A stretch of DNA of 64,000 nucleotides from Hemiscyllium ocellatum (Eukaryota). Positions 22,801 to 64,000 of the stretch are shown here, piece by piece. The stretch is from positions 4,543,479 through 4,607,478 of the forward strand of contig NC_083450.1 of assembly GCF_020745735.1 (NCBI RefSeq), read 5' to 3'. The position numbers and the translations under genes are program-made. The stretch's first letter is position 1. Each line of letters begins with the position of its first letter. The notes beneath the pieces were generated by a model. That model saw nothing but the letters and a program-made list of their open reading frames with translations, did not search any database and was not told the DNA's origin.

Positions 22801-23049
22801 TTCTCACTACTCTTTGACCAGATTGACTCAAAAGGTGTAGAAGGAGACCGTTCAGCCCCGTGAACCTCTTCTGCCCTTTAATACAGGATTGAGGCTGATT
22901 TGTGTCTCAACTCCCTCAAACAACATGTATGATTCCTGAAATGTTGAATCTCTTTACCCAACCCAATCAGTGCAATGAGTTGGGCTGGGGTGGTGACTGG
23001 AAAATAGTGATGCTTGAAAAGTAGCAAAATACAGAGCTTCCAAGACCAG

Positions 23050-36595: not shown

Positions 36596-36789
36596 GGTAA
36601 GTTATTTTTCCCCCTGTACACATTACTCCCTGAGATTTATCAACACTTCTGTATACTTTCAGTGATACTTCCATGTAGTACAGACAGATCATATTTTGCA
36701 AAGTGTGCCAGATAATAGAACAGGGCGAGGAACATAATGCTAAGGCTGAAAAGAAGGTGCACAATGAGCAAGATCATCATTGGATTTAC

Positions 36790-37765
36790 AATTTGAGAGA
36801 TCCATTCAGTCATCGAGTCATACAGTCATAGACATGAACAGCATGGAAACAGACCATTTGGTCCAACCTTCCCATGTCGACCGGATGTCCCAATCCAATC
36901 TAGTCCCACCTGCCAACACCCGGCCCATATCCCTGCAAACTTTTCCTATTCATATACCCATCGAAATACCTTTTAAATGTTGCATTTGTTCTAGCCTCCA
37001 CCACGTCCCCTGGCAGCTCATTCCATACACGTACCACTCTTTGCAAGAAAGGTTTGCCCCTTTGGGTATTTATTATATCTTTCCCCTCTCATCCTAAACC
37101 TATGCTTTCTAGTTCTGGGCTCCCCTACTCCAGGGAAAAGACTTTGCCTATTTATCCTATCCATGCCCCTCATGATTTCAAGGAGCTATGAACCTGCACT
37201 TCACGGTCTCTTTGTTCAGCAACACTCCCGAGAATAGTACCATTAAGTGCATGAGGCCTGCTAAGATTTGCTTTCCCAAAATGCAGCACTTCGCATTTAT
37301 CTAAACTAAACTCCACCTGCCAGTTCTCAGCCCATGTCTGATCAAGATCCCGTTATAATCTGAGGTAACCTTATTCGCTGTCCACTACACTTCCAGTTTT
37401 GGTGTCATCCAGACAAATGTGACGTGATGCATTCAGTCAAGTCTAATTCTACAGCGAATTATACATTGAACGGAAGAGCCTTGGGAAAGGTTGATGGGCA
37501 GAAAGATCTGGGAGTGCAAGTCCATTGTATCGTGAATGTTGCTGCACAGGTGGGTACAGTGGTCAAGAAGGCATATAGTATGCTTGCCTTCGTTGGACGG
37601 GGTATTGAGTATAAGAGCTGGCAAATCATGTTAAAATTGTACAAGACATTGGTTCGGCTGCATTTAGAATACTGTGTACAGATTTGGTCGTCACATTACC
37701 AAAAGGATGTGGACGCTTTGAAGAGGGTGCAGAGAAAGTTTATGAGGATGTTGCCTGGTAATTAG
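36790..37765. mobile_element. CR1 LINE fragments in both orientations
   Basis: ORF 37424..37765 encodes the CR1 RT C-terminus (DLGVQVH...LEYCVQIWS...RVQRKFMRMLPG); a minus-strand 3' end lies upstream. Confidence 0.8.
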
Positions 37766-39611
37766 GAATCAATGGTGGGTGCTGGGCTCAGCTGACAAAA
37801 GTCCTGTGAAAGTTGAGGCGGGAATACACTCTGTCAGTGCAATCCTTCTGTGCTTCTGCCTTCCATGACCTCCTTCAGTTTTGGTTGGCCATGCTACACG
37901 CCCTCCCTCACACTCTTATTCTCCTTCGGCCAGTGAAAAGACAGATTTGTCAATAAATAGTTAAGGCATCAAGGGAGAAAGGGGGGATGTGACACTGAGG
38001 TCATGGCCAAATTGAATGACTGAGCGGGCTCGAAGGACCGAATGGCCTCCTCCTGCTCCTAGCTCCTGTGTCTCCCAAACCGCCATTCTTTGCCTGTTCT
38101 TCTGCCTCAGGCAAGTCGAAGGGGCCTGACAAATGAGAATTAAAAATGTGCTGTTGGCTGGTATTCACCACCTGGCAAGAACATGTACTGGGTTGGCAAG
38201 TACACAATATGCTACGCCAACTACGTGTGGGGCAACTATTTAAATAAGTCCAAAGAGGGATTTTACCTGGTGGGAACTGTAAGTTACCATTACTGTGATA
38301 GCTCCATTAACGCCTACTCCTCCTCCCCCTCCCTCATTGCAATCCTTTTGACTCAAATGTGCACGTATGCCTCCCATTGGCATCTCTTTTCTTTCCAAAC
38401 ACACACACACATGCTGTCTCTTTTCCTCACACCTATAATCACACACTATTCAAACGTGGGCAACGTCACAACACAACCTGAAGTGGCACTCTCACTGAAA
38501 GATGTAGCTTGGTGCCATGACGCGTTACAGCATGGGCACAGAACCAGACAGCCTTTGTATCTGCAGATTTAACATGCAATGAAATTAAAATCAAGAAAGA
38601 CCCTCAAAATTGATTCCAGTGAATCCTAACCAGGCGTTTTTCAGTACGAATCTTAACAACCACAGTTTTGATCAGGAAGCAAACTGCAAATAATTTCCAG
38701 GCCTTACCTCACAAATAAACAAAAGCATGTTTTGTCTGTTTTCCTTTAAACACAAACTCTTACCCAGAGTCGAAAAGTCATCTTTAGCTCACAATTCACA
38801 GCTCCAGAACAACATTGATAAAAGTTTTCACATACAAACGATGAAAAATCATTGAGGTTTCTGAAAGGTGGAGCTGACCGACTGAGTTTGCATGGGTGAG
38901 GTAGTACTCAACAGTGCTGGGGAATGGATGGTCGGGGTAAGTGTGAGGGCAGGTCGATCTGGGGGCTGTTACATGTGAGAGATGGGCAATTAGAGATAGT
39001 TGCTGATATATACGCAGAATACTGACCCAACTCAATAAATATATGCAAAACACAAAACAGAATATCTATCGTCATATGTCATTTCACAGTTTGACAGAAC
39101 TGACTCATTAATCGCAAGTGATCTATGAATTGCACTAGCAGCCAATTTAGGGTCATCAATGTAGCTTGGAAAGTGAGTCAATTATGCATGCCAACTCTAC
39201 ACATGTGGATAGGAAGGGAACAGTCCTCTCCAGCCAAAATTAACATCGCTGATTACTCTTGGACCAAAATCCACTTCCTCTTATTCACTCCCCATAGAAA
39301 GGCATATAGAGATGAATGTATCAACGTCGAGGCATTGGTCCTTGTTGCAATCCAAACATTCCCCTTTCCTCTTGTGATATAAGTTATTGCTCCCTTTGTA
39401 ATTTTGTATTCTTGCGTCGTGTTCTGACGAATTCAAAAAGCAAAAATATCATAAGATACGATATGATGTTGGCTGCAAGTCACAGAATGTGGCCAATCAA
39501 ACAATGCCAGATTATAGCCGTGCTGATGCTCCAATCGAGTCTACCTGCATCTTTGCTCATCTAAGTTTTTCGATGTGACCCTTCATAACCTCTTGCCCCC
39601 TAATTTCCAGG

Positions 39612-39910
39612 TTAGATTCCCTACAGTGTGGAAACAGGCCCTTCAGCCCCACCAGTGCACATCGACCCTCTGAAGAGTAACCCAACCAGACCCATTTCCC
39701 TCTGACTAATACACCTAGCACTATGGGCAATTTAGCATGGCCAATTCACCTGACCTGCGCATTTTTGGATTGTGGGAGGAAACCGGGTCACCAGGAGGAA
39801 ACCCACACAGATGCAGGGAGAATGTGAAAACTCCACACAGACTGTTGCCTGAGCCTGGAATCGAACCTGGGACACTTGCTTCTGTGAGGCAACAGTGCGA
39901 ACCACTGCCC
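39612..39910 (-). mobile_element. HE1-like SINE
   Basis: Reverse of the SINE body and tail (ACAGTGTGGAAACAGGCCCTTC). Confidence 0.85.
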
Positions 39911-42900
39911 AACAAGGGCAGGTTCCCACAAGTGCATCGAATTCATGCACTTCACAACCGTTCACTCCCTCTAGGAGCACGTTCCACCTTCTCAATGCTC
40001 CTTCCCTTTATGGATTTTTTAGGGCATTCTAAAGTCTCGTATGGTCCAACAGAACGGAGACAGGCCATTTGGACCAAATTGATTCATGCCAACAAAACAT
40101 TCATTCATGCTAACCACATTTCCCTGCATTTGGCACATATTCTTTAAAGCTGTCCTCTCCATGTATTTGTCCAAAAGCCTTTTAAATTTTGTGAAGGTAC
40201 CCACCTCAACCACTTCCTATAGCAGCTCATTCCATACGTGTCACATTCTCTGTGTAAAAGCGTTACCCTTCGGCTTCCCCTTTATTCTTTCCCCTCGAAC
40301 TAAAGTGTCCCAAACCTGGGAAGAATACTGAGTACATTCACTCTATCCATACCTCTCATGATCCTATTCACTTCCATAAGGTCTTCTCTCAGTCTTTAAT
40401 GATCTGAAGAAAATAATTCCTATCGTGTCCAACTTCATCCTCTAATTGTGACTGTTGACTCCAGGCAATATTTTTGTAAAATTCTTCTGCACTCTTTCCA
40501 GTATAATAACAACTTTCCTATAGTAAGGTTACCAACACTGCACACTATACTCAAGTGCTGCCTCATAAAGGTTCTGTCCAACTGATCAACTTGTCCGCTC
40601 AAAGCCCTGACATAGAAAGCCCAGTGCCAAAGGCCTTTTTCACTGCCCTGTCTAACCGTGACTTGTCCTTCAGAGAACAGTGCAGCTGAACTCCAAGTTT
40701 CCTCTGTTCCACTAGACTCCTTAAGGCCCGACTATTTACTATGAAGGCCCTACCGTTCACCAGCATCGATTCCACAGAGTTAGCAGGAGATCGCTCAACC
40801 CCTCAATCCTCTTTGACCTTTCAATCAAAGAGTGAGACTGAGTTACCTCTCAACTCCCTCAAAACACATGCATATTTTCTAAAGTATTTAATGTCCATAC
40901 CAACACAATAATTGCTAGGAGTTGGTTTGGGCTGGGGCGTGGGGAAATGGCGTTGCTCAGAAACTAAACAGGATCGGCCGCATAAATAGTGTAGCCACGT
41001 AAATATCAAGGGAAGGGCAGAAGCTGTGAACTCTGCAACAAGCAACTCACCTCTTCGCTCTCCAAAACCTTTCCAACGTCCACAAGGCACAAGTCAGGAA
41101 TGTAGTGGAATTTTCCCACTTACTTTGCTGGGAATGAAACATGGCATCGTTCAGGATAAAGCAGCCTCCTTGATTGGCACGGCATCCACAAATGTACATT
41201 CCCTCCGCCACCGACTCTTAGTAGCAACAATAAGTGTCATCTACAAGACAGACTGCAGCAATTCGCAAAGGTTCTTGAGACAGAACTTTCTAAACCTACA
41301 GGTCTAGCCTCGAAAAGGACAAGGGCAGCTGATACATGTGAGCACCACCACCTGCATGATCTCGTCCAAGCCACGCATTATAACTGATAAATACATCCGC
41401 CATTCCTTCAGAGTGGTTGTATCTAAATTCTGGCATTCCCTCCCGGACAGCACTATGAGTGTACCGCACGAGGACTGTAGCAATTCAAGAAGGTGGCTCG
41501 CCACACTATCTCAAGAGGGAACTGGCATTCTATATTAAAGGGTTGCCTAGCTAGCAGTGCCCATATCCCCTGACATGAAAATGCAAAATAAAATCATTGA
41601 GTTTGTGGAAGCCTGCTGTGTACAAATGGCGGCCATCTTACCACCTTCGGAACAGTAGAGTGGATTAGAGTAGCTTGATTTTTCTTTCTACCATATATAG
41701 CTGGTACAATAAATAAAAGAGAGAACGTTCCTCTAGGACCAAGGTACTATACGAACATATAGAATACACGAGAATACGGTCATACACAGGGCAGCATAAA
41801 GTGCAAAGAAAAATACAAAACATTCAAGACAGTGAATAATTCCTGACAAGACAAAACAGTAGGTACAATAGTAGACAAATTACAATGTAACAATGAATGA
41901 TCATTAATAAGACGCTGTTTTAGCATCAATTCAAAAAGTCGTCCGAAATTGCAAATGGAACAGAATGTGATCATGCAATGTTAAGGCGTCTGATGACTTG
42001 GGGGAAAGAAACTATTGCACAGTCTGGCCGTGAGAGACAGAAGTGACCGCATTACTGCAAGTAATTAATTGGCTATGAAGCACTTTAGGACATGCTGATG
42101 TTTTGACAGGCGCTATGTTAATGCAAGCTCTCAAACTTGTTCTGACGGCGCAGCCTGAAATTTATCAAGCATGAAGTGTTGAAAGGCTGCGAGTAGAATT
42201 GAAAGCCAGTGAGGGCACAATAAGGAAGTGTTACTGACAGCTTCTGATCAACACTGCTCATATTCTTTCAGCCACAAATTAGTGTAAAAAATTAAATGGG
42301 ATCTGATAAATGCAGCCGTTGGCGAGAGCATAGAGGGCGATTTGCTAGAATGAGAGCAGGGATGAGGGTCTTCAGTTTAAACTTCGTCCACCCCCTCCTC
42401 GTTCTGGACACCGCTCACGGATGTAACTTTGCACATCTCAATATTCTTCAACCCGACACAGATGTTTGAGTGTCCTTTAGCAACTGGCCATTAGTTCTCT
42501 GAAGAGAAATCCTCCATAATTTCTCCTTTCCACAGTTTTTTAAAAGCACTTTCCAACCATTAAAAAACTTCTTCAAGACTGTCAGAGCAAAGAGAAACGG
42601 AGGTGGGTGAATGGCCTGGAGGAGTTGAAAGAGGTAGTGAGTGATGAAGGGGCTAGAGGAGGTAACACATTGGGTGTGTTGGAGAGGCTGGAGTAGATTG
42701 CAGCTAGAAAAGGATTTAGCTGGAAGAGGTTTCAGCGATACAGTGGGTTGTAGGAGCTGGACGAGGTTTCAGAGATAGGGAGGGCTCTGGGTACTTGAGT
42801 AGGTAACCGAGAATGGGAAGTTTGCTGAGCTGGAGGATTTTACAAAACGAGAGAGAGCGACAGTGCTGGAAGAGGTTATGCAGATAGGGAGGAGTTTGCG

Positions 42901-45023
42901 GCTGGAGATGGATACAGAGATAGAGTTATGCAGCATGAACACAGACTCTTTGGTTCATCTCGTCTAGTTATGCTAAACTAGTCCAGTCCTATTTACCAGC
43001 ATTTGCCTCATAACCTTCCAAACTCTTCCTATTCACGTCCCCATTAAAATGCCTGAGAAGTATCATAATTGTGACTCACTTCCTGTGACAGATTATTCCG
43101 TGCATCACACTGCCCTCTGTGTGAAAAGATTGCCTCTCAGGTCCCTTTGAAGTCTTTCCTTTCACCTTGCAACTGTGCCCTCCAATTTTGGACTCCTCTA
43201 CCCTGGGATAATACCTTAGCTATTCATCCTATCCATACACCTTATAATTTTATAAGTCTCTATAAGATTTATAAAACTGTCAGCCTCCAACGGTCCAGGG
43301 AAAATAACTCCAAATCTTTCAGCCTTTACCTGTAGCTCAAAACCTCAAACCCTTGCAACACCCTTGTCAATCTTTTGTGAACTTCTTGAAGTTAAAGAAC
43401 ATCTTTCCTATAACAGAGAGACCAGAACTGAACATATTCTAAAAGTGGCCAAATGAATGTCTGTATAGCCCCAACTCTTATACTCATAGCACTGATAAAT
43501 GAAGGCAAAGATGCCAAAGGCCTTCTTCCCCAGCCCGTCTAACTGTTATTCCATTTTCAATTAACTTTGCACCCTTATATCTGTTGGTTTCGCAGCACTC
43601 ACCACTGTATCCCATTAAATGTCCAAGGCCTGCCCTGATTTTACTTACAAGGTGCAACACTTCATTGTGCTGTAGGGGTTGAAGGAGATTATAAAGATGT
43701 GGAGAAAGTTGTGGCTAGAGGAGGTGACCAAGATATAAGTAGTGCAGGAGCTCAAAAAAGATGATTTAGGAAAGGATGGGTTCAGGGCCTGAGGAAGGGC
43801 ATAGTGATACAGACGGATTGAGGGGCTGGGGGTGGTGACAGAGATAGGGATTGGGCTAGGTTGTGTAGGAGGTTGCAGAGGTGGGAATGGTGTATTGACA
43901 TTTTTGCTTCCAGAGGAACGGTAGGTGTAGGGATCGGTGGATTGATACAGGTACGTGAAGGGATTGGAGGCATTTGCACAGGTAAGTGGATTGTACGTGC
44001 TGGAGGAGGTGACAGAAATAGGGAGGGAGTTTTGGAGCTGGAATAGTTGACAGAAATTGGGAGGAATATAGGGCCTGGAGGAAGTGGAAGAGATAGAGAA
44101 GGCTGTAGGAACTGGAGGAATGTGTGGAGGTCGCATTGGACATCAGGGCAGGAGATCTGATAGAGATAAAGAGTGTTGTCCTTTCTGTTGGAGGTTACAG
44201 AGGGGTGGAGGCGGTTACCAAGATACGGAGGATTGTAAGTACTGGAGGATTTGATAGAGATAGCGAGGGATTTGCAGGCTGGAGGTGGTTACAGAGATAG
44301 GAAGGGAGAGTAGGAGCTGGAGAAATTGGGAATGATGTGGGGACTGGAGGAAGTCACAAAAATAGGGAGATAGTGAGGGACTGGGGTAGGTGAAAAAGAT
44401 AGGTAGATTTGTTTGTGCTAGAAGAAGATTCAGATACAGTGATCAGTGCAGGGCTGGAGTTGCTGGCAGAGACAGGAAGAGGTGTAGACACTGGATTGTG
44501 TGACAGAGATAGCTGAGTGGCGGAGCGACTGGAGGATATCAGAGATAAGGAGGGGTGTTGAGATGCAGGGACTAATAGTAATAGGGTGTGTAAACGTTGG
44601 ATGAGTCTACTAAGTTTGTGAGTGTTGTAGATGCTGGAGGTGGTCATAGCGATTGGGACAAGTTTTCCAGCTGGAGTTGGTTACAGAGATAGGGAGTCAT
44701 GTCGTGGATGTCGAGGATTGGATGTATTTGTAGAGATGCAGGGCATGGATTAGATAACAATGGAGTGAAATAAAGACCTCAGATGGGTACAGAGAGAGGT
44801 AGGAGTGTCGGCGCTGGAGGCATTGACAGAAATAGGGAGGAATCTTGTGGTCTGCAGGAAATGGCAGAGATAAGAAAGTGTGTAGGAACTGTTTGAGAGT
44901 GTGGAGATAGGGCGGGATACAATGGCTGGAGGAGGTGACAGAGATGTGAGGGTTCAGGGACTGGAATTGTTTACAGAAATAGGGGTTAAAGGGGTTTGAG
45001 GAGTTTAAAGTGACAGGGATTGA

Positions 45024-45333
45024 TTAGATTAGACTTACAGTGTGGAAACAGGCCCTTCGGCCCAACAAGTCCACACCGACCCGCCGAAGCGCAACCCACC
45101 CATACCCCCACATTTACCCCTTACCTAACACTACGGGCAATTTAGCTTAGCCAATTCACCTGACCCGCACATCTTTGGACCGTGGGAGGAAACCGGAGCA
45201 CCCGGAGGAAACCCACGCAGACACGGGGAGAATGTGCAAACTCCACACAGTCAGTCGCCTGAGTCGGGAATTGAACCCGGGTCTACAGGCGCTGTGAGGC
45301 AGCAGTGCTAACCACTGTGCCACCGTGCCGCCC
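45024..45333 (-). mobile_element. Full-length young HE1-like SINE inside the unit 3 minisatellite
   Basis: The reverse complement starts GGGCGGCACGGTGGCACAGTGGTTAGCACTG; (GATTA)n tail. Confidence 0.9.
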
Positions 45334-45829
45334 ACAGTTTCAGTTGCTGCAGAATTACGTGGTGAAACAATTTGTTACAGAGACTAGTGAGTGTTATTTA
45401 GATACAGAGTGATGAAGCTTCGAGAGAAGGTTACAGATTTGGTGAAAGTTCGTGCGATATGGAGGTTCAAGGGACTGGAGGATTATGTGGTGGAAGGCCG
45501 GGATACAGGAACTGAGTTTATAGAGATAGGTAGAGTTTTAGGGGCTGAAGGAATTGACAGAGATAGGGAGGGTTTTAGTGTCTCGACGAGTTTACAGAGC
45601 TGGGAGGAGAGTCAGAGAGATTGGAGATATCTGGAGAATGGTATTGGAACGTGTGGTGGTTACAGAGATAGGGATACCTGTCAGACCTGGTGACAATGCT
45701 AGAAAAAAAAAACAGGGAACCTAAGGACTGGAGGATGTTATCAGGATTAGAGAGTTTGAGCTATAGGGAGAGGCTGAAGTGATTGGAGTTGTTTTCCCAG
45801 GAACGTTAGAGGCTGAAGGATGACCTGAT

Positions 45830-46196
45830 ACAGATGTGTATAATCATGATGGGCATGAACAGGGTAAATAGAATGGTCTTTTCCCCAGGTGGAGGGTAGT
45901 GGTGGTTGTCCAGAAGTAGAGGGAATAGGTTTAGAGTGAGAAGGGAATATTTCAAAAGGGATCTAAGGAGTAACGTTTTCATGCAAGTGGGTAGTGAGTG
46001 TAAGAAATTAGCTGCCAGAGGAGTTAGTGGAGGAAGGTATAGTTGCAGCATTTAAAAGGCATTTGGATGGGTACATGAATAGGAAGGGTATACAGGGGTA
46101 TGGGACAAGTGTTTGCAAATGGTACTAGATAATTTAGCATATCTGGTCGGTATTGAAGGATTGGACTGAAAGGTCTGTTTCCATGGTCTATGACTA
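45830..46196 (+). mobile_element. CR1 LINE 3' end
   Basis: AGCATTTAAAAGGCATTTGGATGGGTACATGAATAGGAAGGG and CTATGACT tail. Confidence 0.75.
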
Positions 46197-49100
46197 AGTG
46201 ACAGCGGTAGAGCAGAATGTTGGAACTAGAGGAGGGAATGGTGATTGGGATTTCTGGATTGGAGGGGTGACAGAAGTAGGCAGGGGATCACGGGCTGAAT
46301 AAGATTATAGAGATAAGGAGGGGTTCATGGGCTGTGGAGGGTGCGGTGACAGGGTAGGATATGGTGTAGAGGAGGTTGCAGAAATTAAAGGTTCAGTGGC
46401 TGTAAATAGAGTGGCATAGAGTTTGAGGCGCATTGCAGAAATATTGAGGTGGGCAGGTCCTGCAGGAAGTAACATATCTCGGGATTGGTGTAGGGACTTG
46501 AGGAGGTGATATTGATAGGGAGGGATGTAGCCACTTGAGAAGGTGACAGGGAGAAGAATGGTTATAGGCCATGGAGGAGATTACAGTGATACTGAGGGGA
46601 TTGGGGGTGATGGAGTTCACAGAGACGGGGAGCGCTGTAGGATTGGAGGGGTCTGCAGAGATAGAGAGAGTATCAGGGCCTGGAGGAGGTGAGACATAAG
46701 GAATGTAGTGACTGGAGGCAATTACACAAATAGGATCAGGTGTCAAGTCTGTCAAAGATAACAGAGGAAGCGAGTGGCGTAGTGTCCAGAGGATGTCAGA
46801 GCAATAGGAAGGATTGTGGTGATTGAAGGGGATGGTAGAGGTATGGAGTGTTTTAGGGCCTGGTGAAGATAATAAGAGAGATTTATGGGGACCTGAGTTG
46901 GTTACAGCAAAAGGGAAGGGTGTATGCATAAACAGAAATCGTGAGAAATATAGTCTCTGGAGGAAGTGGCAGAGATAAGGAAGGGTGGAGAAACTGGAGG
47001 AGAATATGGAGGTAAGGCAGGATATAGGGGCTGGAGGAGATAGAAGAGATAGGCACGGGCTGAAATATAATATGGTGGTAGGGTTGGATTTATTGAGTGG
47101 AACACGTTACATAAAGAATGGTGTGGGATCTGGAGGAATTTACAGAGGGTTGGGGTTCAGGGCCTGGTGGTAGCTCCAGATTTAGGAAGAGGTAAAGGGC
47201 CTGAGAAGTTTGCAGAGATATTGAGGTGTGTAGGGCCTGGAGAAGGCAGGACCTTGAGAAGGTGAGAGGGATAAGAAGGATTTAGTGGCTGGAGGAGATT
47301 ATAAAGATGGCGAGGAGTTTAAGAGCTTGAGGTGGTTACCAAAACACGAATGGGTATTAGGGCTTGTTGAGATGTCAGTGCTAGGGAAATGTATATTGGC
47401 TGATAAGGTGACACAGATGGGGAGATTTGTAGGAGCTCAAGAAAGTTACAGAGACAGGGATGTGTGCAGGAGATGGAGGGAGTTAAAGAGATAGGGAGGT
47501 GTGAAGAAGATGGAATATGTAAAAGAAATAGGGAGGGTTATACGTGCTGCATGAATGAAAGATCGTGTGAGTTCCGGCGTGGGGATTGAGTGACTGGGAA
47601 CAGGAGGGAAATGGAGAATGAGACACTCCAGAGCGTGAACAGCAGATGGCCACTATTTAGAGTGACCCAGTCTATCACGGCTCTGTATGTGTAAATGTGC
47701 GATACGCCTGAGAAGGTGAGAGGTTAATGGAGTCTCTGCATTTTTCCTCCTGCACATGGGTGAAGCCATAGTTGTCTGCGTGGTGTTTTGGGGCTGACGA
47801 CTGATTCTGCCACGGGCTACTGCTCCTGCTGCTGCTGCTGCTGCTGCAAATTGCTCAGTGATCAGTGAGGTTTCAGTTCCTCCGCCGACATGTCCCTCCC
47901 CTTCCTCTCCATCTGAAATGAATAACCACACCACCTGCATCCCCTTCACAAACACGCTAAAAACAGCATTGCTGCGTCTCTCGGGGGGTAAAATGAGGCA
48001 TCTGAAACACCACCCGGGTCCCCGAGGTGGAGAGACTGCGTTGCTTTCAACTCAGATGCAGAGACAGACTTGAAACCAACTCTTCAACTCCGTGAATCAT
48101 CATCGGGATGGTTTTCATTAGACTGCTAAAGTGTCGTTGTTCTAAAGAAGCTTTCAAAGCAACAAACCTTAAAATCAAACCGAAGACTCCATCTAATATA
48201 GAGAAGGCCGTTCAGCCATTCCATGCTTCTCTTCTATTCATTAATGAAGAATGATTATTTCATAACTCCACTTTCCTATCTCACACCCCTTGATTCACTT
48301 AATCTACAAATGTCTACCTATTAGAATCTTCCATAGGCATCGAAAATGGCACAGATTCAGTAGGCACTGGGTGAAAAGAATTTCTCTTCACCTCAGTCCA
48401 AATTAGCTGCTCCATATCCCAGCCCTTTCAGAAATACCCTGTTTTTCTGTTCTGCCAACCAAAATGGTGGCCGCACATTACCACTTTAAAACCATTATAC
48501 GACATAGGCCATCTTCTAAACTAATGATTCTGACTCAATACAGAGCTATGATTAGGTTATTGAAAGGTATGAGATTAATATTTCAAAAATAATTGAACGG
48601 GGTCAAGCAAAAACTAAAGTCACAGAATCATAACTGTCGCCAGCAGAGAAAAAGGTCTTTCAACCTATCAAGTCTGAACTGATCAAAAATCATCCCTTAG
48701 CTATTCTAATCCCGTTTCCAGTACCTGCCTACGCAAATGCACAACTAAATATGTCTTCAATCTGACGGGCTTTCTACCTCTACCAACCTTACGGTTGTAT
48801 TTTCCAGATAACCACCAACCCCCGCATGGAAACAATTTTTCTCATACTGTCCTTGAAAACTCCTGTCCCTTGTTCTTAAATTTATGCCCCCCTCCCCTCC
48901 CCAGATCAGCATAGATGAGTTGAGTCAAAGGGCCTGCTTATGTGATATACGTCTTTATGACCACCAAGGAAGCACAAAGAAAATAGGAGCGTTTCTTTTT
49001 TGAAAATTCATGTTTTGAAGTCGATTTGGTTATTGATGTTCAACATGAATAGAACAAAGAGTATTGAGAGAGATAGTGCGAACAAGGAACTGTGTTAGAT

Positions 49101-49463: not shown

Positions 49464-51978
49464 ATGTTCATGACGCTGCATCTGCTGTGGACTCTACTGA
49501 TCCATGTAATAGGTCAGGAATTGTTCTAGATGAACGTCTGTCAGTTAAGTATCATTCGGGTTTGTTTCAAATCCACTGGCAAAGTCACTCAATGTCTCTA
49601 CGTATTTCGTCAATTGTAGGTACCTTGGCTGATCCTGTCCTCAATCAGAGTCCAGTGTCCGACCCAGTCTCTGCCGGTCAGACGGTCCAGTTGAAGTGTG
49701 CAATGCAGAATGACGATGTGGACAGCTACGATGTGGACTGGTATCGACAGAGTCCCGGAGAAGCGTCAGTGTGGGTGATCACACAAGATACAGATGATGA
49801 TATATCCAGGGGCACTGGCTTCACGAACCGATTCCAACCTTCTCGAGACACCTCCAGTAACAATTTCATCCTAACCATTGAAAACCTGGTCTCCAGTGAC
49901 TCTGCCATCTATTATTGTGCTGTGTGGCATAGCTCAGCATGGATCTTCGGAGGTGGGACTGCCCTGGCTGTTCGGAGTAAGTCATTTTGTTTTATGTTTG
50001 TCTCCGTATTATTGTTCAGATTAGCTGACATTTTCTTCCTTCAGCGTTCTTTAGATTTTACCAAAATGCATTTTTCAACAAATCTATCGCATACATATAA
50101 GTCCAAGTGTTACATTAATCCTTCACTCAACTCTCACTCACTCACTTGCTCACTCATTTACTTTCACTCACACAATCACTCACTGATTCGCTCACGCACT
50201 GACTCACACGCACACCAGATCAACGTATTATTTATACTAACAATTCTATCACACACTCGCACAACTGTTTGTGTGGAGTTTGCACGTTCTCCCCGTGTCT
50301 GCGTGGGTTTCCTCCGGGTGTTCCGGTTTCCTTCCACAGTCCAAAGATGTGCAGGTGAATTGGCCATGCTAAATTGCCCGTAATGTTAGATGAAGGAGTA
50401 AATGTAGGGGAATGGGTCTGGGTGGGTTGCTCCTCTTTGGAGGGTCGGTGTGGACTTGTTGGGCCGAAGGTTCTGTTTCCACACTGTAAGTAATCTGATC
50501 TTATCTAAACTCAGTGCGTGTCATATGTATTAATTATTCTCTCGCTCTCTCACAACCGCACGCAATTCAGTGCGTGACATGTATTAACGATTTCTTCTCT
50601 CACACAAGTGTATATCAATGATACTTTCACATATTCTGGTCCATCTTACATTAATAATTCTCTCTTTCTCACAAATATACTCAGGCCAGAGATTGTATCA
50701 AATTCACTCTCATGCACACAAAGTAGTGTAACACTGATAATTAATTTTCTGATTCCAATATCCAGCGGTCTGAGTGTTTATATGTGTGTATATATATATA
50801 TATGTTATTATTTTTATTATTATGTTATTGTCGTTATTAATAATTCTCTATCTCACAGACACACTCAAGTAAGAGTGTTGCATCCATAACTCACACACGC
50901 AAACACATAACAGCCAGAGTGTTATTTATGTCAACAATTGTCTCTCACATTATCACAAACATAACTGAATTTATAACACTAGTTCAGTCACACATACACA
51001 CTGGGTTGGTATTATGCTAATAATTCTCTAACTCACAAACACACGCAAGTGAGGTACGTTACATCAATAATTCTCTTAAACACACATGTCAGTGTTGTAA
51101 TTATAATTCTCTGCCTCATGCACACATTGATAGTAATATATGTTCGCAATTCTTTCTGCCTTCATTTCTCTCTCGTCCTCAGACATATACACAGAGATGA
51201 GAGTTTACATCAATAATTCTCTCTCACATGCACAGTCAGAAAGTTCATCTTGCTATTTCTTATACATATAGGTCAGTGTGTTATATATGCTAACAATTAT
51301 CTCTCATGCAGGTCAGAGTGTTATATTTATTAATAATTATCTCTCACACAAAGGTCAGATAGTTATATTAAGAAATTTGCCCTGTCTCTCACGCACGCAG
51401 GTCAGTGTTACATTAATCAGTCTATCTCACACAAACAAATAGCAGTCAGAATGTTACTAATATCAATAATTCTGGCTCGCACCCGCCATCACCACTCCCT
51501 CCTACCCCTCCCAAATGCACATACACACACACGAAACACACATAGATCCGAGATTACATCAATAATGCTCACACACACAGGTCACTACTACATTAAGAAT
51601 TCTCTCAACGAGAGATACACAGAGATCAGATGGTTATGTATATTAATAATTTTATATCTTCTGCCTACTCACACANNNNNNNNNNNNNNNNNNNNNNNNN
51701 NNNNNNNNNNNNNNNNNNNNNNNNNNNNNNNNNNNNNNNNNNNNNNNNNNNNNNNNNNNNNNNNNNNNNNNNNNNNNNNNNNNNNNNNNNNNNNNNNNNN
51801 NNNNNNNNNNNNNNNNNNNNNNNNNNNNNTTCCTTCAGAATTATTCTCAGAATAACGCACAGGTCAAAGTATTGTTTATTTTCTCTCTTTCTCACATACA
51901 CAAAACACACATAGGTCAGATTTAAAATTGATAACTCACACACTCAGATCAATCTGTAATTCTCCCCCACATCGTCTC

Positions 51979-52010
<32 letters not shown>

Positions 52011-53144
52011 AACACACACAGAGGTTACTATTATTACTATTTATAATAATAATTCTCTCTCATACATTCAAATGCAGGACAAAGACTATAACAGTTCTTG
52101 GATATCAACTCACGGGTCAGAGTTCTATTATTAATTCTCTGTCTCACCCAAACAGACCTGTCACAGTGTTTGATGTGTATTAGTGATTATCTCTCTCTCT
52201 CTCTTTCTCTCATGCGCACACACATACACACAGGTCAAAATTTACAACATGTCACAAGCACAGGTAAGGTAGCCGATCTTAATATTTCTGTCACAGAGAG
52301 GTCAGCACAGAGAAATATAAATAATTGTCTCTGACACGCTGGTCAGGTAGTTATGTTAATGACACGCTCTCTGTCTCTCCTCTCTCTCAAACACACACAC
52401 ACGTAGAAAGTTATGTTAATGCTTCACTTATTCACTCAATCTTATAGGCACTCATATATCAGAGTTTTGTATATGTTAGAACAGCTCACACGCATCAGTC
52501 AGGTAGTTATATTAATAACTCATTATTTGCCTCTTTCACACATGCATACACAAGTCTGAGTGCTATATATACAAATAAATATCTGGCAGGCTCTCCATAT
52601 CGCTCACATGCATAGGTCAGAGCGCAATATAATTACCTTCCTCACGTGCACACACACGAATCAGAGTGTTGAATATTAATAACTTTCTGTTGGTATTCCA
52701 AGCACATACATAGCTCAGAGTCTTATTTATGTACAATTATCTTCGCACACATCGATCACAGCATTTTTTATTCATATACATACATATAAAATCCCCTTTC
52801 TCTGTGTTTCCCCACAAACAGGTAGTGATGATCAGAAACCATCTGTTCTTCTGCTCCCACCTTCACCAGAACAAATAGACACGGGATCAGCCACCCTGTC
52901 CTGTCTGGTGAGTCGATTTAAGCCAGGCTTTGTGCAGGTCCTCTGGAGTGTAGATGGGAAGGAGACTGGCAGTGGGGTGACCACGAGCCCTGTGTCCCGG
53001 GACAACGATCAAAGCTACAGTCTGAGCAGTTACCTGACAGTTCCGGCCACTGACTGGAAGAAAGGCTCCAGATATTCCTGCAGTGTGAGGCACGGTTCAC
53101 TGAACTCGCCTCTCCTCAACACCATCAGCTCCAGTGACTGTTAG
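49464..53144 (+). CDS. IGL: Intact germline-joined immunoglobulin light chain, shark type II (lambda): exons 49464-49512 (leader), 49620-49976 (VJ), 52822-53144 (C); 242 aa
   Basis: Leader MFMTLHLLWTLLIHVIG is followed by a GT donor at 49513 and an AG acceptor at 49618-19. The V domain has canonical Cys (LKC), Trp (WYRQ) and YYC and runs directly into the J motif FGGGT with no RSS; donor GTAAGT at 49977. Acceptor ACAG ends at 52821. C1 domain SDDQKPSVLLLPPSPEQIDTGSATLSCLVSRFKPGF...YSCSVRHGSLNSPLLNTISSSDC* has a terminal Cys. Exon lengths 49+357+323=729 nt are in frame. The C sequence closely resembles the sandbar shark lambda/type II C region as I recall it. An N gap lies in the J-C intron. 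Confidence 0.93.
49620..49976 (+). CDS. Germline-joined VJ exon of cluster 3
   Basis: Open frame GTLADPVLNQSP...YYCAVWHSSAWIFGGGTALAVR(S), flanked by AG and GTAAGT, with no heptamer or nonamer between V and J. Confidence 0.95.
50270..50508 (+). mobile_element. 5'-truncated HE1-like SINE in the J-C intron of the intact gene
   Basis: SINE body and tail; it accounts for the tail of ORF 49373..50383 (VCVEFARSPRVCVGF). Confidence 0.9.
51676..51829. other. Assembly gap (154 N) in the J-C intron of the intact gene
   Basis: N run. Confidence 1.
52822..53144 (+). CDS. IGLC: Ig light chain constant exon of cluster 3 (intact)
   Basis: Pyrimidine tract plus ACAG acceptor; open C1-set frame with Cys-Trp-Cys; TAG at 53142-44. 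Confidence 0.95.
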
Positions 53145-53419
53145 CTCTGAGGCTGACAATGTCACGGGTCAGTTACTGTGTGTCATGTTGCGTTTCCTTG
53201 TTTATTCTTGCTTTGCAATGTAATCTCTGCAGCAATGTTAGCGTTTGGTTAGTAACCTCAATATTGAAGATTATCGGGAGTAAGTGAAATGATTGTTCAA
53301 TTTGGTAAACGGTGTAATTGACCCCAGTATTTTGTGTGTCAACTCTAGTTCTGAGTGGAATGGGGAGCAATCTCCCCTTTTAGGCAATGACCATGTTGAA
53401 CTTTGTAAGCACAGCTCTG

Positions 53420-56317: not shown

Positions 56318-58469
56318 TCTCTCAAACTCATACATGAAGAACAAACATCTCCTGTAACACTTCAGGGTGGAATTTAAATTTCAGCATTGCTAAATTGCAA
56401 TTTCAATTATCCAGGAATTTATCTCTCATATTCGTGTACATAATAATCCTGAGGCTAAATGACTAGCAAGGGAAAACCGCTGGTCAGAGCAAGGAGTTAT
56501 TTTATGAGGAGAGATTAAGCAATTTCAGCCTGTATCATTAATGCTTAGACTGACAGGACTAGTTGGCGTGTATAAGATGCCAACCGAGATTGAAAAATTT
56601 ATCAGAGAGAGCAGCTTTCCTCATGTGGGGCATGAGAGGTCATGGTTTTAGAATAAGGGATATCAGATGTAAAAGAAATATGAGAGGAATGATTTTCTCA
56701 AAGCGTTGTGAATCTATGCCGTGTGATTGGTGCCAGGTCCTGTGATCCAGATCATGCCCCCTCCAAATATTTAAGAAGTTAGCCTAGAACCTACTTTTTT
56801 TTTCTTAATTTAAAGTGGAATGAAAATTGTCCGCCCTAGATGTAATGCAATTTGCCAAACTGCTCGATAATAAGCAAAATACAATTATTTGAACACTCTA
56901 ATTAAAATCATCCAAAGAAAGATGAACTTAGAATAATTTAATTCTATTGGAAAACTTAACAGAATAATGCATACAGGAACGGCTGCTAATTAATTGTTCC
57001 AATATAGTAGTATCTCATAAACACACTCCTTGGCCAAAACAACGAGAAAATTCAGCGTTAGTTCTAGCCAGGAGACATTTATTGAAGCTTCCAACTGTTT
57101 TGAGACCATAGCAGTTTTGATGGTACTCCGAAAACCTGATCAGTGTGAGCAGATCACAGCCATTCACGCAGCATTTTTTTTTAAAAAGCCAAAGGTCTCC
57201 AAAGCTGATTACTAAAGTGTTCTTCAGTAACCAGGTCTTTCCCCTCTGACTTATACATTCTCTTCAATAAAAAAGGACAAAATAACCCCTTTAGATGACA
57301 GCATTGTCACACAGGACTAAGCAACTTGAGGAGGAGACAGAGTTGTAAGTAAGAACTGTGGGACGGTGTCGTAATGGAGAGCAGTCAGAAAAGTGGAGTT
57401 GAGGCCGAGATGAGAACAGCCATGTCACATGTATGGTGACCAGGCTGGGAGGCTGAATGCATCCTCCTGCGCCTGAATCTTATCCTGAATTTTTATGAGA
57501 TTCACTGCAGAGACTGGACAACCTTGCAAAATATGTATGTCTGAAGCCAGCACACAATCTGCTGTGATTACACAGTGGATAAACGCTTGTTCCCAGGGCA
57601 TGAACCTCCATTCTTTAGCTAACCCTTTCAGAGGGAATATGACAGTATAGCATTGGGATTTGATTTGATATGATTCACTGTGGGATAACATCTACTTCCT
57701 GAAAGCGAGAAGCAAAATGAGGTGTGCAAGCTCGAACTACCTCCTATTAAAAGACAAGGAAGTGGGATTGAGTATAAGCAGATCATCCATTATCTCATTG
57801 AATGGCGGAACAGATTCGATGGGCTCAATCCTTCAGCCCATATGTCTAATAAATCTTCAAAGGCAAAACTGTCCCAATGCAAGATTCTAAAGTCTTGGTC
57901 AAGTTGATTGGGTAAAGAAAATGCTCAATTGACTCAGAAGTAATATCGAAACTGTGTGAATTATAGACTGAAAATAAAACAGTGATATGAAGCATGAGAA
58001 TCGCTGTTGAAGGTGAAATGAGTTTTACAGTGTGTCAGGAAACTGAAGGGAAAATGGGAAGCGATATCTAGTCAGCAAAGTGGTGCACCGACTGTGATCA
58101 TATTCCTTCCGCTCGGGGCTGTGAAAAGGTGGATGACACTGACTGCAAATCTAATCAACCTGAGCTGGGCATGGAGATGGCGGTCAGGGGGTTTGAACGG
58201 CTTCACATGTCCCCACTCTCACTGACCGAGCTGTCAGTGTACATCCAACACTGAAACCACACACACAAATAGTTTGCCAATTGGGTAGTTTAGGATGAAG
58301 TGGAGGGGGCATGCGACATGGATGTGGGGAGTTGAGTCAGATCGTTTGTTCTATTCATTTTTGTGAATACTGCCTGGCCTGACTTCAAAAGAAAACAATC
58401 TCATCCGAAAATCAGCGCTGTGCAAAGAAGAAGCGGAGACCTGTATGTTGATGAATTCAGAGCCCAAGC

Positions 58470-58695
58470 TCAGCATTTGTTGCAGGTGCTGGATCAGTGG
58501 TGCTGGAAGAGCACAGCAGTTCAGGCAGCATCCAACGAGCGTGCTTCCAGCTCACTGCCTTTTTTCCTGATGAAGGGCTTTTGCCCGAAACGTCAAAAGA
58601 TTTCGCTGCTCGTTGGATGCTGCCTGAACTGCTGTGCTCTTCCAGCACCACTGATCCAGAATCTGGTTTCCAGCATCTGCAGTCATTGTTTTTAC
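58470..58695. mobile_element. Penelope pseudo-LTR inverted repeat with an intact-looking hammerhead core
   Basis: Perfect 51-bp arms (58490-58540 and 58608-58658); CTGATGA-AGGGCTTTTGCCC-GAAACGTC at 58567-94. Confidence 0.85.
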
Positions 58696-58705
58696 CTATT
58701 TGCTG

Positions 58706-59295
58706 CCGCTGGATGGCGCTGAGACTGATCTATATCCTCAACCGAGCCATTGGATGGCCCTGTGATGGATACTTATCCCCAACCCAGTCACCGGGTAGCG
58801 CTGTGACTGATATATCCTGCATGCGCTGTCACCCCGGGTGGGTACCGGGCCGGGCTGTCCTAGAGGTGGTCGAAAGGTGTGTGAGGGCGGACCGAGAACT
58901 GGAAGGGGCACGGGGTGGACCGAGAACCAGAAGGTGGGTAGGGGTGGGCTGCCTTAGAGTGGTCAAAAGGTGGGAGGGGTGGGGGCTTGCTGGGTCTGTA
59001 TTGTCTGCACTTCTGTATGTAACCGTATTGTTTAATGTACAAATGTCATTGTCACACTCTTGTTAAATGTAGAACTGGGATTTGAGGTTTGTCCTCATCT
59101 CCCTGTAAAATGGTCAAACGGTAGGGTTTGGGGCCTAGCTTTTCTGCTCCTCTCCCTTGTAAAATTGCTGTCTCTTGTACAGCTGTAAATGTTTATTGTA
59201 AACTGTTTTGTAATTTATTTAATAAAATAAAAAAAGAACAGGGAAAAAAAAATATCCTGCATGCGCACACACTTATCCATGCCGCTAGGTGGCGA
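58706..59295 (+). promoter_or_regulatory. Array of CTCF-like motifs 3' of cluster 3
   Basis: Cores at 58706 (CCGCTGGATGGCGC), 58747, 58788 and 59282 (CCGCTAGGTGGCGA). Confidence 0.6.
58827..59251 (+). mobile_element. 425-bp 5'-truncated poly(A) retro-insertion with 15-bp TSD ATATCCTGCATGCGC
   Basis: TSD at 58812-26 and 59252-66; AATAAA and A-rich tail at the 3' end. Confidence 0.82.
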
Positions 59296-59609
59296 TGCGT
59301 TATTATAGTTTTTTTTGTCACACAGATGTTTTAAAATGTAATTTATTATTGTCATATTGCGCTCTGTACAGTGAAATCTCTGTATTGGTTTCAGACAGGC
59401 ACATCATATGATATAAAGTGCATCCGGATAATAGAACTGAGTGAAGAACGCAATGTTATGGCTGCAGAGAAGGTGCACAAAGAGTAAGGTCGACATTAAA
59501 TTTACAATTTGAGATCTCCATGCAGAAGTATACTAACAGCGGGAAAGAAGCTGTTTTTCAATTTGTTCATATATGTGTTTCAGTTTTTCTGTGTTTCTAC
59601 CAAATTGAA

Positions 59610-60960
59610 GAAGTTGGAAGAACACAAGAACATAACAGCTAAGAGCAGGAGTAGTCCATCTGGCCCTTCCAGCCTGCTTTGCCATTCAGTAAGATCCTGG
59701 CTGATCTTTTAGTGGCCTTAGCTTCACTTGCCCGCCCTCTCACCATAACCCATGATTCTTTTACAGTTCAAAAATTATCTATCTCAGCTTTAGAAACATT
59801 TACTCAGAAAGCTTCAATCACTTCATTGAGCAAGGAATTCCGAGGATTCACAAGAAGTTCCTTCTCAGTTCGGACCTCCATCTAGTCCCCTTAATTTTGA
59901 GGCTATGCCCTCTTGTCTTAGTTTCACCCACCAGTGGGAACATCCAATCTACTTCTATCTTATCTATTCCCTTAATTGTATTATGTTTTTATACTATCCC
60001 CCAATCATTCTTCTAGATTACAATGAATATAGTCCCAGTCTACTCAGTCTCACTCATAAACCAACCACCTAAACTCTGGAATCAACCTTTTGAAAATCCT
60101 CTGCATCCCTTCTCGTGCCAATGTATTATTTCTCAAGTAAGGAGATCAAAACTGTACACAGTACTCCAGGTGTGGCCTCACCAGCACCCAACACTACTGC
60201 AACATGACCTCTCGTTTTTAAACTCATCCCTCTAGCAATGAAATATAAAATTCCATTCGCCTTCTTAATCAACTGCTGCACCTGCAGACCGTACTTCTGT
60301 GATTCATGCTCAAGGACACCCAGGTCCCTCTGCTGAGCAACATGCTGCAATTTCTTACCATTCATGTAATACTCCTTTTTACTAATATTCTGACAGAAAA
60401 GGATGACTTCACATTTATTAACATTATACTCCATCTGCAAGAGCGTTGCCTATTGATTTCGACTACCTATGTTCCACCTGTAAAGTTTCACAGTTCTCTG
60501 CACACTTTGATCTACCACTCATCTTGGTGACATCTGCAAACTTTGACACACGGCGCGTGGTTCCCCAAAGACAAATAATCGATGCAAGCTGTGAATACTT
60601 GCGGTCCAAACACTGATCCCTGAGGCACACCACCAATCACTGATTGCCAACCAGGAGAGCATTTATTTATTCCCACACTTCGTGTGGTTTAATCAATCCT
60701 GTACTCATGCTCATGCACTGCCCGTAACACCTTCCATCTTTATCTTACCTAGTAGGCTTTTGTGCATTACCTTATCAAATGCATTTTGGAAATCTCGATA
60801 CACCATATCTACTGGGTCTCCATTGTCCACCATGTTTCTAATGTCTTCATAGAATTCCGAAAGATTAGTTAAGCATGACTGCCCTGCATGAATCCACGCT
60901 GCATCTGTCCAACGGCACAATTTCCATACTTTGCTATTCCTTCCTTGATGATAGTTTCAA
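59610..60960 (-). mobile_element. CR1 LINE, decayed RT to 3' end
   Basis: Minus-strand SCLTNL.EFYED, DMVY.DFQ.AFDKV, MEYNVNKCEV, QRDLGVL and LEYCVQFWSP-like motifs. Confidence 0.88.
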
Positions 60961-61129
60961 GCATTTCCTCTCCACAGAATTTAAACTGGTCTATAATTCC
61001 CCATTTTTGTCTAACTCCCTATTTCCCCTCTCACCTAAAGCATATGCACTCAAGTTTTAGACATTCCTGCCATTTGTTATTCATCACATTCATACCCCTC
61101 ATGATATTATAAGCTCTATAAAAGGTTGC

Positions 61130-63800
61130 ATTGATGGAGGGTGTTACAGAGATTGAAGAGATTTAAGTGCTAGAGGAGGTGCTAGAAATGGAAGTAAGAG
61201 AGATGGGGGTCATGTAGGACCCGGAGGAGATTGCAGTGATAGTGAGTGGTTTAGAGTCTGGACGAGGTGGCAGAGATGAGGAGGGGATTAGGGGCTGGCA
61301 CAAGTCACAAAGACAGGGAGTAGGGAGGAGCGTTCCGAGGTAGAGAGGGGTGCAGGGCCGAAAAAGGTGACAGAGATAGGAAGAGATTCAGGGACTGGAT
61401 GAATTCAGAGACATAGGGAGGAGTGTAGGGGATAGGGGAGATGGTCAAAAGTAGAGAATAGCTGAAAATGTGTTGCTGGTTAAAGCACAGCATGTTAGGC
61501 AGCATCCAAGGAACAGGAAATTTGATGTTTCGGGCCAGAGCCCTATCAGCAACACATTTTCAGCTCTGATCTCCAGCATCTGCAGACCTCACTTTTTACT
61601 CGAAAAGTAGAGATTAGTACAGTGTCTACATGCGGGTATAGAGGTGGGGAGGTGTATAGGGTTTGCAGGGCCCTACAGAGATTGGTGTAATGTAAGGAAC
61701 TGGAGGGAGTGACAGAAATACAGAATGGTGGATGGGCTGAAGGAGATTACAGAGATGTGGAAGGGGTCCATGCGCTGGAAGAAATCACAGAAATAGAGAC
61801 GGGTATTGGGCTGTAGTTGGTCATAGTCATAGGGAGAGGTACAGGGATAGGAGTGAATGTCAGCGATGGGCAGTAATGCAGAGGATGGACGAGGTGACAG
61901 AGATAAGGAGGAGTGTAGAAATGGATGGCGTTAAAATCATTGGGACGGCATTTATGGTGGGAGGGCATTTATGGTTACAGAGATATAAAGGAGTATTCCG
62001 AGTAGAGGGGATTGCATAGATATAGGGATGTGAGTGGTCGAGCAGAGATAACACGGGAGGTTATCGGAATCTGATGTGGGTACGGAGATATGATGAGGTA
62101 TAGGCACTGGAGACATTCGGGAAAACATGGAGGAAGCTTGGTCCTGCAAGAATTGGCAGAGAAAGGAAAGAGTTTAGGAGCTGGAGGAGGCAATGGAGAA
62201 AGGGTGGGAAATGGAGGCTGGAGGAGATGACAAAGATGAAGAGTAGTTCAGGGAATGGGAAGTAGTATAGGGACTGGAGGAGGTTCCACACATAAGGAGA
62301 GGTTCTGTCCTTAAAGGAGAATATGGCGAAACTGAGGGTTACCAGAACTGGAGGTAGTCATTTAGATAGGAAGGTGTGTAGCGTCAGGAGGAGGTGGCTG
62401 AAATAGGGAGGGGTTGGGCTGGAATTGGTTCTAGAATTAAGGACGGATATAGGGGTTGGAGCAGGTTACAGGAATAGGGAAAGGTATAGGGGCTGGGAAA
62501 TGTTACAGATGGAACATACAACATACAGCATTAAAGTGCAGTACATACCCTTTGGCCGTGGATGCTGCACCGACTTGTGGAACCAGTCTGAAGCTCATCT
62601 AACCTACCCTATTCCATTCTCATCCATATGCCTATCCAATGAATATTTTAATCCCCTTAAAGTTGGCAAGTCGTGAATTCCACGCCTCTACTGATATAGG
62701 GAGGAGTTTAGTAGTTGGTGGATGTTAAAGAGGTAGACGGACGAATTAGGGCTGGAGGAGGTGACAGAGGTTAGGAGGGATGTAGCTGAAGGAAGTCAGA
62801 GAGATAGGGATGAGTATCGGGATTAGAGTGGTTAACAGAAAACAGGGACAATGTAGTGACTGAAAGAGGCAACAGAGATAAGGAGATAACAGAGATAACA
62901 GCGGTGAGGAGAGGTTGCAGAGATTGGTAGGGGGTTCAAGGGCATTTGGCGATACCTGGGAAATTGGACTGTGACCTGAGGTATTTATAGAGATAGGGGC
63001 ATTGGAGACATTGTCAGAAATCGGGAAGTACCTAGGGTCTGGATGAAGTGGCAGAGATAGAGAAGGGTGTTGGAACTGGAGGAAGGTATGACAATAAATT
63101 AGGGTGGATGTGCTGAAGAAGGCGACGGAGACAGGGCGGTGTTCAGGAGCTGGAGGAATATATGGTAAATAGGTTAACTACAGGGAGTTAAAGAGGTTGC
63201 AAAGTTGGGAAGTGGTGACTTGTCTGGAGGAGTTACAGAGATTGAGAGGGGTTCTGGGGCTGGAGCTGGCTACAAAAATAGGGTCAGGCATAGGGTCTGA
63301 AAGGGAACTGTTGAGTTTTGAGGATCCTGGAATAGGTAACAGAGATAAGAGTTCTATGGGAACTTGAGGAGGTGATAGGGATAAGGAGGGATGCAGTGGG
63401 TGGAGGAGGTTATATAGATAGTGCAGAATGTAATGGCTTTAGGAGATTACAGAAAGATGAACAGGTGTAGGGGATTGTTGATGTGAGTGAGACAGGCAGG
63501 CGTGGAGTAAGTGATAACGTTACAGATTTAGGGAGGTGTATAAGAGCTGGACAGCATTAACAATAGGGATGGGTATGCATAATGGAGGATTTAACTGACA
63601 CATGGAGTCCTGTAGGGGCTAGAGACGTATGCAAGAGATAGAGTTAAAGAAATAAAGAGGGGTATAGGGATTGAAACTATTATACAGTGTTGGAGTGGTG
63701 TAGGGGCTGGAGAATGTTACAGATTGGCAGGGCAATATGAGCTGGATGATGAAAACTGGTGTGAGATTTGGTGTGGGCCTTGAATGCTTGGGAACATGAG
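61130..63800 (+). repeat. 37-bp G-rich minisatellite, unit 4
   Basis: Same motif, followed by the conserved block that precedes every V promoter region. Confidence 0.85.
61462..61602. mobile_element. Internally deleted copy of the 16.5-kb Penelope palindrome with a 15-bp TSD (14/15 match)
   Basis: AAAAGTAGAGAATAG at 61447-61 and AAAAGTAGAGATTAG at 61603-17. Confidence 0.75.
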
Positions 63801-64000
63801 TAAAATGGGGAAATGAGAGAGTCCAGAAGTCAAATAGCAATAATCCAATTTGGTTGTTTCGAGTGACTCAGTCTATCAAGGTCTGTTTGTGTAAATGTGT
63901 GACGTTTCTGAGAAGGTGAGGGTTTGATGGAACTTCTGCATTTTCTCTCCAGCTCGTGGGTGAAGCCACAGCCGCCCGTGTGATGTTTTGGAGCTGACGA

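Follow-up and report, generated by a model that had tools for sequence, protein, structure and literature searches.

The immunoglobulin genes of sharks are distributed over tens to hundreds of separate V-(D)-J-C miniloci, and we know of no account of how the autonomy of each minilocus is enforced. The locus described here raises the question of whether a tandem array of CTCF-like motifs, situated behind an intact light-chain gene, could take part in it. In the stretch of 64,000 nucleotides of Hemiscyllium ocellatum DNA that was analysed (hereafter the window), three light-chain cluster repeats were identified, with a period of 22-24 kb. Cluster 1 (V 5055-5303, J 5689-5763) has no detectable C exon, as tblastn with the cluster-3 C domain retrieved none in its region (1-11000). 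Cluster 2 contains a V segment (~28412-28671) and a C exon (30975-31262) with stops; over 30907-31266 we observed several stops or frameshifts. Cluster 3 is composed of a germline-joined VJ (~49658-49976) and an intact C exon (52821-53147, + strand) of a sigma-2-type light chain and, since no C exon was detected in cluster 1 and that of cluster 2 is broken, no other gene of the window is intact. A search with the C-domain protein (exon-only query, length-limited search) returned no homologues at E <= 1e-10. The J-C intron of cluster 3 (50600-52300) is largely a degenerate ~40-55-bp minisatellite, CACACA-GGTCAGAGTGTTA..ATAATTCTCTC, for which TRF gives a period of 40 at 51270-51369. Blocks with a strong G-over-C skew (+0.2 to +0.5) are present upstream of every V (1-4000, 24000-26000, 44000-48000 and 62000-64000); they are devoid of long ORFs and include tandem repeats of a G-rich 37-bp unit (45514-45607, 47420-47536).

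The first-pass annotation had placed four 14-mers behind cluster 3, at 58706, 58747, 58788 and 59282, and all of them were found there, as four units of one array (c3; the arrays behind clusters 1 and 2 are designated c1 and c2). Its claim of an exact 41-bp spacing of the first three was reproduced by a repeat search (41 + 41 bp), although the array escaped TRF (minimum score 30), its units having diverged too far: the identity among units 1-3 is 70-83% across 23 nt and 73% across the full 41 nt. Unit 1 (58706-58746, + strand; 19-mer 58703-58721) retains both ancestral CpGs and ends in the tail CTGAGACTGA. Unit 2 (58747-58787, +; 19-mer 58744-58762) has the tail CTGTGATGGA; its counterpart in c1 and c2 is the second unit, which is shortened there. 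Unit 3 has the tail CTGTGACTGA and is split into a 5' part (58788-58826, +; 19-mer 58785-58803), whose last 15 nt are the left copy of a target site duplication (TSD), and a second part (59252-59281, +), made up of the right TSD copy followed by the 3' remainder of the unit (59267-59281). The tails of these three units are of the type CTG(A/T)GA(C/T), in agreement with the TG(T/A)GA(C/T)-type tail annotated for them. The last unit, unit 4 (59282-59310, +; 19-mer 59279-59297), keeps both CpGs but, reading GATGCGTTAT at the tail position, is devoid of that tail and of the TGTGACTGA tail. With head-to-tail units in the range of 10-100 bp (41 + 41 bp in c3 and 41-42 bp for the first two units of c1 and c2), the array has the structure of a minisatellite.

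The array is interrupted by a poly(A)-ended retroposon of 425 bp (58827-59251, + strand), which belongs to a high-copy family (contig depth ~1e5) and lies outside the functional candidate. An exact 15-bp direct repeat, ATATCCTGCATGCGC, at 58812-58826 and 59252-59266, brackets these 425 bp with their terminal A-run, and this duplication together with the A-run is the signature of a retroposed element. Without the retroposon, unit 4 would begin 54 bp after unit 3, so that both the TSD-flanked insertion and the gap of ~54 bp that had been annotated are borne out. In a relative (organism B, ~5% diverged), a contig of 1056 nt joins 57787-58488 to 59252-59480 with ~125 nt between them; it is the empty site for the retroposon as well as for a hairpin MITE upstream, and organism B has the three units. 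Since the retroposon is absent in organism B, its insertion into unit 3 is lineage-specific. Rfam recognized neither a tRNA nor a 5S head in the retroposon, and for this reason a resemblance to the 3' part of 5S rRNA, noted by eye in units 2 and 3, was not upheld. The hairpin MITE (58483-58689, unstranded), with 58-nt arms that are 97% complementary, lies just 5' of unit 1 and is not part of the array. Further copies are present in the window at 16505-16689 and 61470-61548 and, with a summed contig depth of 1e6-7e6 in three shark species, it is among the commonest repeats of these shark genomes; Rfam gave only sub-threshold mir-90 and mir-2007-like matches to it. Another dispersed repeat (depth ~3e4; organism C match ~81%) is located just 3' of c3 and c2 (59395-59525 and 36680-36809), in an equal relative position, and was probably inserted before the cluster duplication.

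We were able to identify such an array in each inter-cluster spacer of the window (three of three, at ~11.8-15.7, 36.0-36.6 and 58.7-59.3 kb), which sustains the claim that the same-orientation array recurs behind the clusters. Array c1 (11820-15674, + strand) is stretched by insertions and comprises units at 11820 (16.2 bits), 12014 (7.7), 13583 (14.7), 14580 (13.1) and 15644 (8.5), in addition to decayed units at 13667, 13734 and 13803. Array c2 (36029-36600, + strand) is broken by a ~210-bp MITE and an (AC)n run, and comprises units at 36029 (5.4 bits), 36110 (13.0) and 36410 (17.6), and decayed units at 36476 and 36578. The first units of the three arrays correspond one-to-one (11820, 36029 and 58703 in c1, c2 and c3, respectively), as do the last ones (14580, 36578, which is decayed, and 59279), and the step from the first to the second unit is 41-42 bp in all three. 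All 16 units have the + (V-to-C) orientation. A unit-derived profile (nhmmer, 64-kb window) matched the three arrays only, always on the + strand, and gave no match in the J-C intron minisatellite at E <= 10. A further motif at 17809 (+, 10.0 bits) was considered as a stray unit and rejected, being without the tail and without the flanks. The single-copy flank upstream of c3 (58270-58482, + strand) is homologous to the 5' flanks of c1 (~11640-11810) and c2 (~35840-36020), and this alignment identifies the arrays as positional paralogs; the array is therefore older than the cluster duplications, and the non-coding DNA of the clusters is now ~70-79% identical (~25% diverged). Each array retains two or three strong motifs, the identity of the strong units varying from one array to another, which looks like turnover with retention. 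The arrays start 4.8-5.6 kb 3' of the C exon (clusters 2 and 3; 5.6 kb in cluster 3), and in the first two spacers the next V is ~13 kb downstream of the array. The c1-c2 and c2-c3 spacers share a block of ~5 kb (20012-24827 and 37971-43208) that is missing from the c3-c4 spacer (59500-62000), which is correspondingly shorter, the array being separated by ~6.7 kb from the position estimated for the next V.

The contig depth of 58712-58812 is 10.8 in the same species (X5) and 18.6 in organism B (X9), which is the level of unique flanks, compared with 1e5-7e6 for the adjacent MITE and retroposon; this depth counts copies at least 80% alike, and more diverged copies would go unseen. The array is thus single-copy by contig depth and not a ubiquitous dispersed shark repeat, an outcome that the first-pass annotation had named as one that would speak against its proposal, nor does it have, among copies at least 80% alike, the many genome copies of a dispersed TE-borne element.

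How CTCF-like the units are was evaluated with the matrix MA0139.1, whose counts were entered by hand (column sums of 908-913 and the consensus TGGCCACCAGGGGGCGCTA, both as expected). At a PWM threshold of p < 1e-5, the 19-mers at 58703 (15.6 bits, p 2.0e-6) and 59279 (16.1 bits, p 1.6e-6) qualify as CTCF-type matches, whereas those at 58785 (9.1 bits, p 5.3e-5) and 58744 (5.5 bits, p 2.3e-4) do not; the annotation of CTCF-like motifs is therefore well supported for units 1 and 4, which are strong matches, and less so for unit 3, which is intermediate, and unit 2, which is weak. Eight matches of at least 12.9 bits are present in the window, all within the three arrays and seven of them on the + strand, versus a mean of 1.69 and a maximum of 5 in 200 dinucleotide shuffles (both strands). 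The only strong match on the reverse strand of the window (12027-12045, 14.0 bits) includes an exact match to CCDSNAGRKGGHDS at 12029-12042; it adjoins unit 12014 of c1 and is absent from c2 and c3. The published IUPAC consensus CCDSNAGRKGGHDS (quoted in PMC2408620) served as a check independent of this matrix: with up to one mismatch it matches the window 30 times versus 16.2 +/- 3.8 expected, units 1 and 4 match it with one mismatch, units 2 and 3 fail, and unit 36410 of c2 matches it exactly (at 36413). Unit 4 is, in addition, an exact match to an older CTCF consensus, CCGCNNGGNGNC, and cores of the CCGC type are a long-used class of CTCF consensus (PMC2408620). The motif matches are not independent, because they all descend from one ancestral unit, and the enrichment therefore has to be read as a single event. 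The 19-mer of the family consensus scores 16.8 bits, a value that composition-matched 31-mer shuffles reach in 3.7e-4 of the trials, so that the CTCF likeness is not due to base composition.

The 16 units were aligned in the MA0139 register. The conserved block extends from ~-3 to +27 relative to the matrix (~31 nt, of which ~8 nt are beyond the matrix), with the family consensus CATCC-CTGCCGCTGGGTGGCGCTG-TGACTGA and the core variant form CATCC-CTGCCGCT[A/G]GGTGGCGCTG-TGACTGA. Conservation is flat across this ~31-nt core and does not have the shape of the CTCF contact profile. The information content of the units and that of MA0139 are uncorrelated (Spearman 0.006, p 0.98; 16 units, a small and non-independent sample), most units have G at A6 and A9, the most informative positions of the matrix, the consensus departing at two key positions, and the tail, outside the matrix, is nearly as conserved as the core (mean information content of the units 0.73 versus 0.90). 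Nine of the 16 units are below 12.9 bits, mostly by losses from CpG to TpG/CpA at two ancestral core CpGs, from which it follows that the decayed units were methylated in the germline. The core CpGs are kept in 15 of 32 cases versus 26.5% in the flanking paralogous alignments (binomial p ~0.01, cases not independent), and the observed/expected CpG ratio is 0.77 in the c3 array and 0.32 in the c2 array, with a window median of 0.44. This retention of CpG hints at protection, strongest beside the only intact gene, and falls short of proof. In simulations of decay from a 21-bit ancestor with 14% change per lineage, the retention of 7 of the 16 units has P = 0.78 with no CpG hypermutation and is unusual (P = 0.007) with a 10-fold faster decay of CpG; depending on which ancestor and which rate of CpG mutation are assumed, P ranges from 0.98 to <1e-4.

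These data have to be weighed between a binding element and other origins of the same sequence. The most serious alternative is a neutral minisatellite, which would have arisen once in the ancestral spacer with a chance likeness to CTCF sites and been copied with the clusters, the strong units being simply those that decayed least. Such an origin would leave conservation flat over the 31-nt core, unlike a CTCF profile, and a retention of 7 of 16 units that fits neutral decay under plausible parameters; it also agrees with the decay of more than half of the units, mainly by CpG loss of the methylation type, with the other ~40-bp minisatellites that fill the same clusters (e.g., in the J-C intron), with motifs in the dead clusters 1 and 2 that are as strong as those of the live cluster 3, and with the tolerance of MITE and retroposon insertions into or beside the array. 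It would, however, require a repeat consensus of such composition to reach 16.8 bits by a chance of ~4e-4, and it sits less easily with at least two strong sites having been kept per array after ~25% divergence, with CpG retention above the level of the flanks and with insertions that fall between the cores and never inside them. We regard the neutral origin as a substantial possibility, though one that we do not favour. The array might also be a remnant of an ancient TE carrying a CTCF-like site, now too diverged to show as a repeat: mammals offer well-known cases of CTCF motifs carried by TEs (e.g., mouse SINE B2), and MITEs and retroposons densely fill the surroundings of the array. Yet 58712-58812 is single-copy, at a likeness of at least 80%, in the species itself and in its relative, the unit profile has no copies in the 64 kb outside the three positional paralogs, and the array is not framed by terminal repeats or target duplications, which makes a TE origin very improbable.

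The extent of the conserved block raises a further alternative, that the units are a regulatory element for another factor, or for CTCF with a partner, i.e., a composite site, for instance a tandem part of a light-chain 3' enhancer or silencer. The upstream CATCC and the tail TGTGACTGA are conserved along with the core (block from ~-3 to +27), T12, C0 and tail positions are conserved at least as well as the CTCF contact positions, and units whose CTCF core is ruined (13667, 13803 and 36476) retain the tail, which in one copy reads TGACTCA, a sequence that we take to be an AP-1-type heptamer. The array is, moreover, ~5 kb 3' of C, where mammalian light-chain enhancers are situated. Equal conservation of core and tail is, on the other hand, also expected from common descent, and the tail was matched to no known factor, CTCF being the only motif compared, so that we consider a composite site unlikely.

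Our preferred reading is that the arrays represent an old single-copy minisatellite with a unit of ~41 bp, in which a conserved core of ~31 bp embeds a forward CTCF-type motif, and that the best-kept units (58703-58721 and 59279-59297 in c3; 11820, 13583, 14580, 36110 and 36410 in c1 and c2) are candidate CTCF-binding elements. Judging from the motifs, the chances that the strong units bind CTCF, and thus form a plausible element, appear evenly balanced. In c1-c3 the motifs have the V-to-C orientation and hence face downstream, towards the next cluster and away from the one that they follow, and no conserved minus-strand partner was found in the cluster unit. By the convergent rule, forward sites mark left anchors and point to the right, and divergent pairs are typical of boundaries (PMC7422557); the arrays, with forward sites only, do not form the divergent pair of a two-sided TAD-type boundary. 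The proposal that each cluster is fenced by an array of CTCF-binding elements (CBEs) holds in that there is one array per spacer, but the arrays are one-sided, with no minus-strand partner; this forward-only polarity would give each cluster at best a one-sided upstream barrier and no closed fence. As CBEs impede extrusion to some degree in either orientation (PMC10293834), a weaker two-sided effect is possible.

From the motifs and their orientation we infer the steps by which CTCF binding and cohesin stalling might affect recombination and expression. With every motif on the V-to-C strand, CTCF, if bound, would turn its cohesin-stalling face to the downstream side. The array of cluster N might then act as a one-sided barrier to cohesin extruding leftward from cluster N+1, by which the upstream RAG scanning and the enhancer reach of cluster N+1 would be kept out of cluster N. 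The two core CpGs would make this binding methylation-sensitive. In mouse, CTCF elements and cohesin extrusion delimit RAG scanning (PMC10293834), and the little skate, also a cartilaginous fish, is reported to show signatures of loop extrusion (bioRxiv 10.64898/2026.10.19.759930). In sharks, heavy-chain rearrangement stays within one minilocus, and only one or a few miniloci are activated per B cell (PMC2435157). Loop extrusion in the skate and rearrangement confined to the minilocus make the hypothesis biologically reasonable, and this confinement would provide such a barrier with a job. That the arrays do enforce cluster-autonomous rearrangement seems nevertheless unlikely. A more elaborate version can be envisaged, in which a downstream-facing, methylation-sensitive CTCF array before every sigma-2 minilocus, where unmethylated and occupied in a given lymphocyte, would select the cluster for looping to a distal anchor or enhancer that the clusters share, and would confine RAG scanning and enhancer action there. 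We judge this version improbable; if true, it would be a protocadherin-like stochastic choice device, explaining both rearrangement within the minilocus and light-chain exclusion in sharks.

Known CTCF-dependent systems share part of these features. Ten consecutive CBEs lie downstream of mouse Igh, in convergent orientation with IGCR1 CBE2 and the VH CBEs (PMC10293834), and the first-pass annotation had drawn the analogy with them. The analogy is sound as far as several consecutive CTCF-type motifs of one orientation are placed 3' of an immunoglobulin constant region; it breaks down on polarity, since the mouse CBEs face back into their own locus (PMC10293834) and the shark motifs face downstream. 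The mouse elements are also spread over kilobases and their CTCF binding is proven, in contrast to a 41-bp minisatellite, one per minilocus, characterized at the level of the motif. A closer parallel in function may be found in mouse IGCR1 CBE2 and the VH CBEs, whose motifs point downstream to the J-based recombination centre and impede upstream scanning (PMC10293834), which is the candidate role of shark array N for cluster N+1. IGCR1, however, is a divergent pair between V and D within one locus, unlike the one-way shark arrays, which are placed between whole V-J-C units, several of which are germline-joined or dead and would therefore need no scanning. The CTCF repeats of the H19/Igf2 ICR (CCGCGNGGNGGCAG class; PMC2408620) are likewise tandem, with a CpG-containing core that starts with CCGC, but the H19 sites are proven and methylated according to parent of origin, whereas in the shark the CpG decay indicates germline methylation of many units.

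Full-text searches linking shark immunoglobulin genes with CTCF or loop extrusion turned up no paper that describes elements of this kind. With two of its four units reaching the motif threshold, the c3 array is a candidate member of the class of CTCF-binding elements at antigen-receptor loci. If the arrays do not bind CTCF, they would be an ordinary minisatellite inherited with the clusters; if they do, the cluster-type loci of cartilaginous fish would already have followed the same extrusion logic as mouse.
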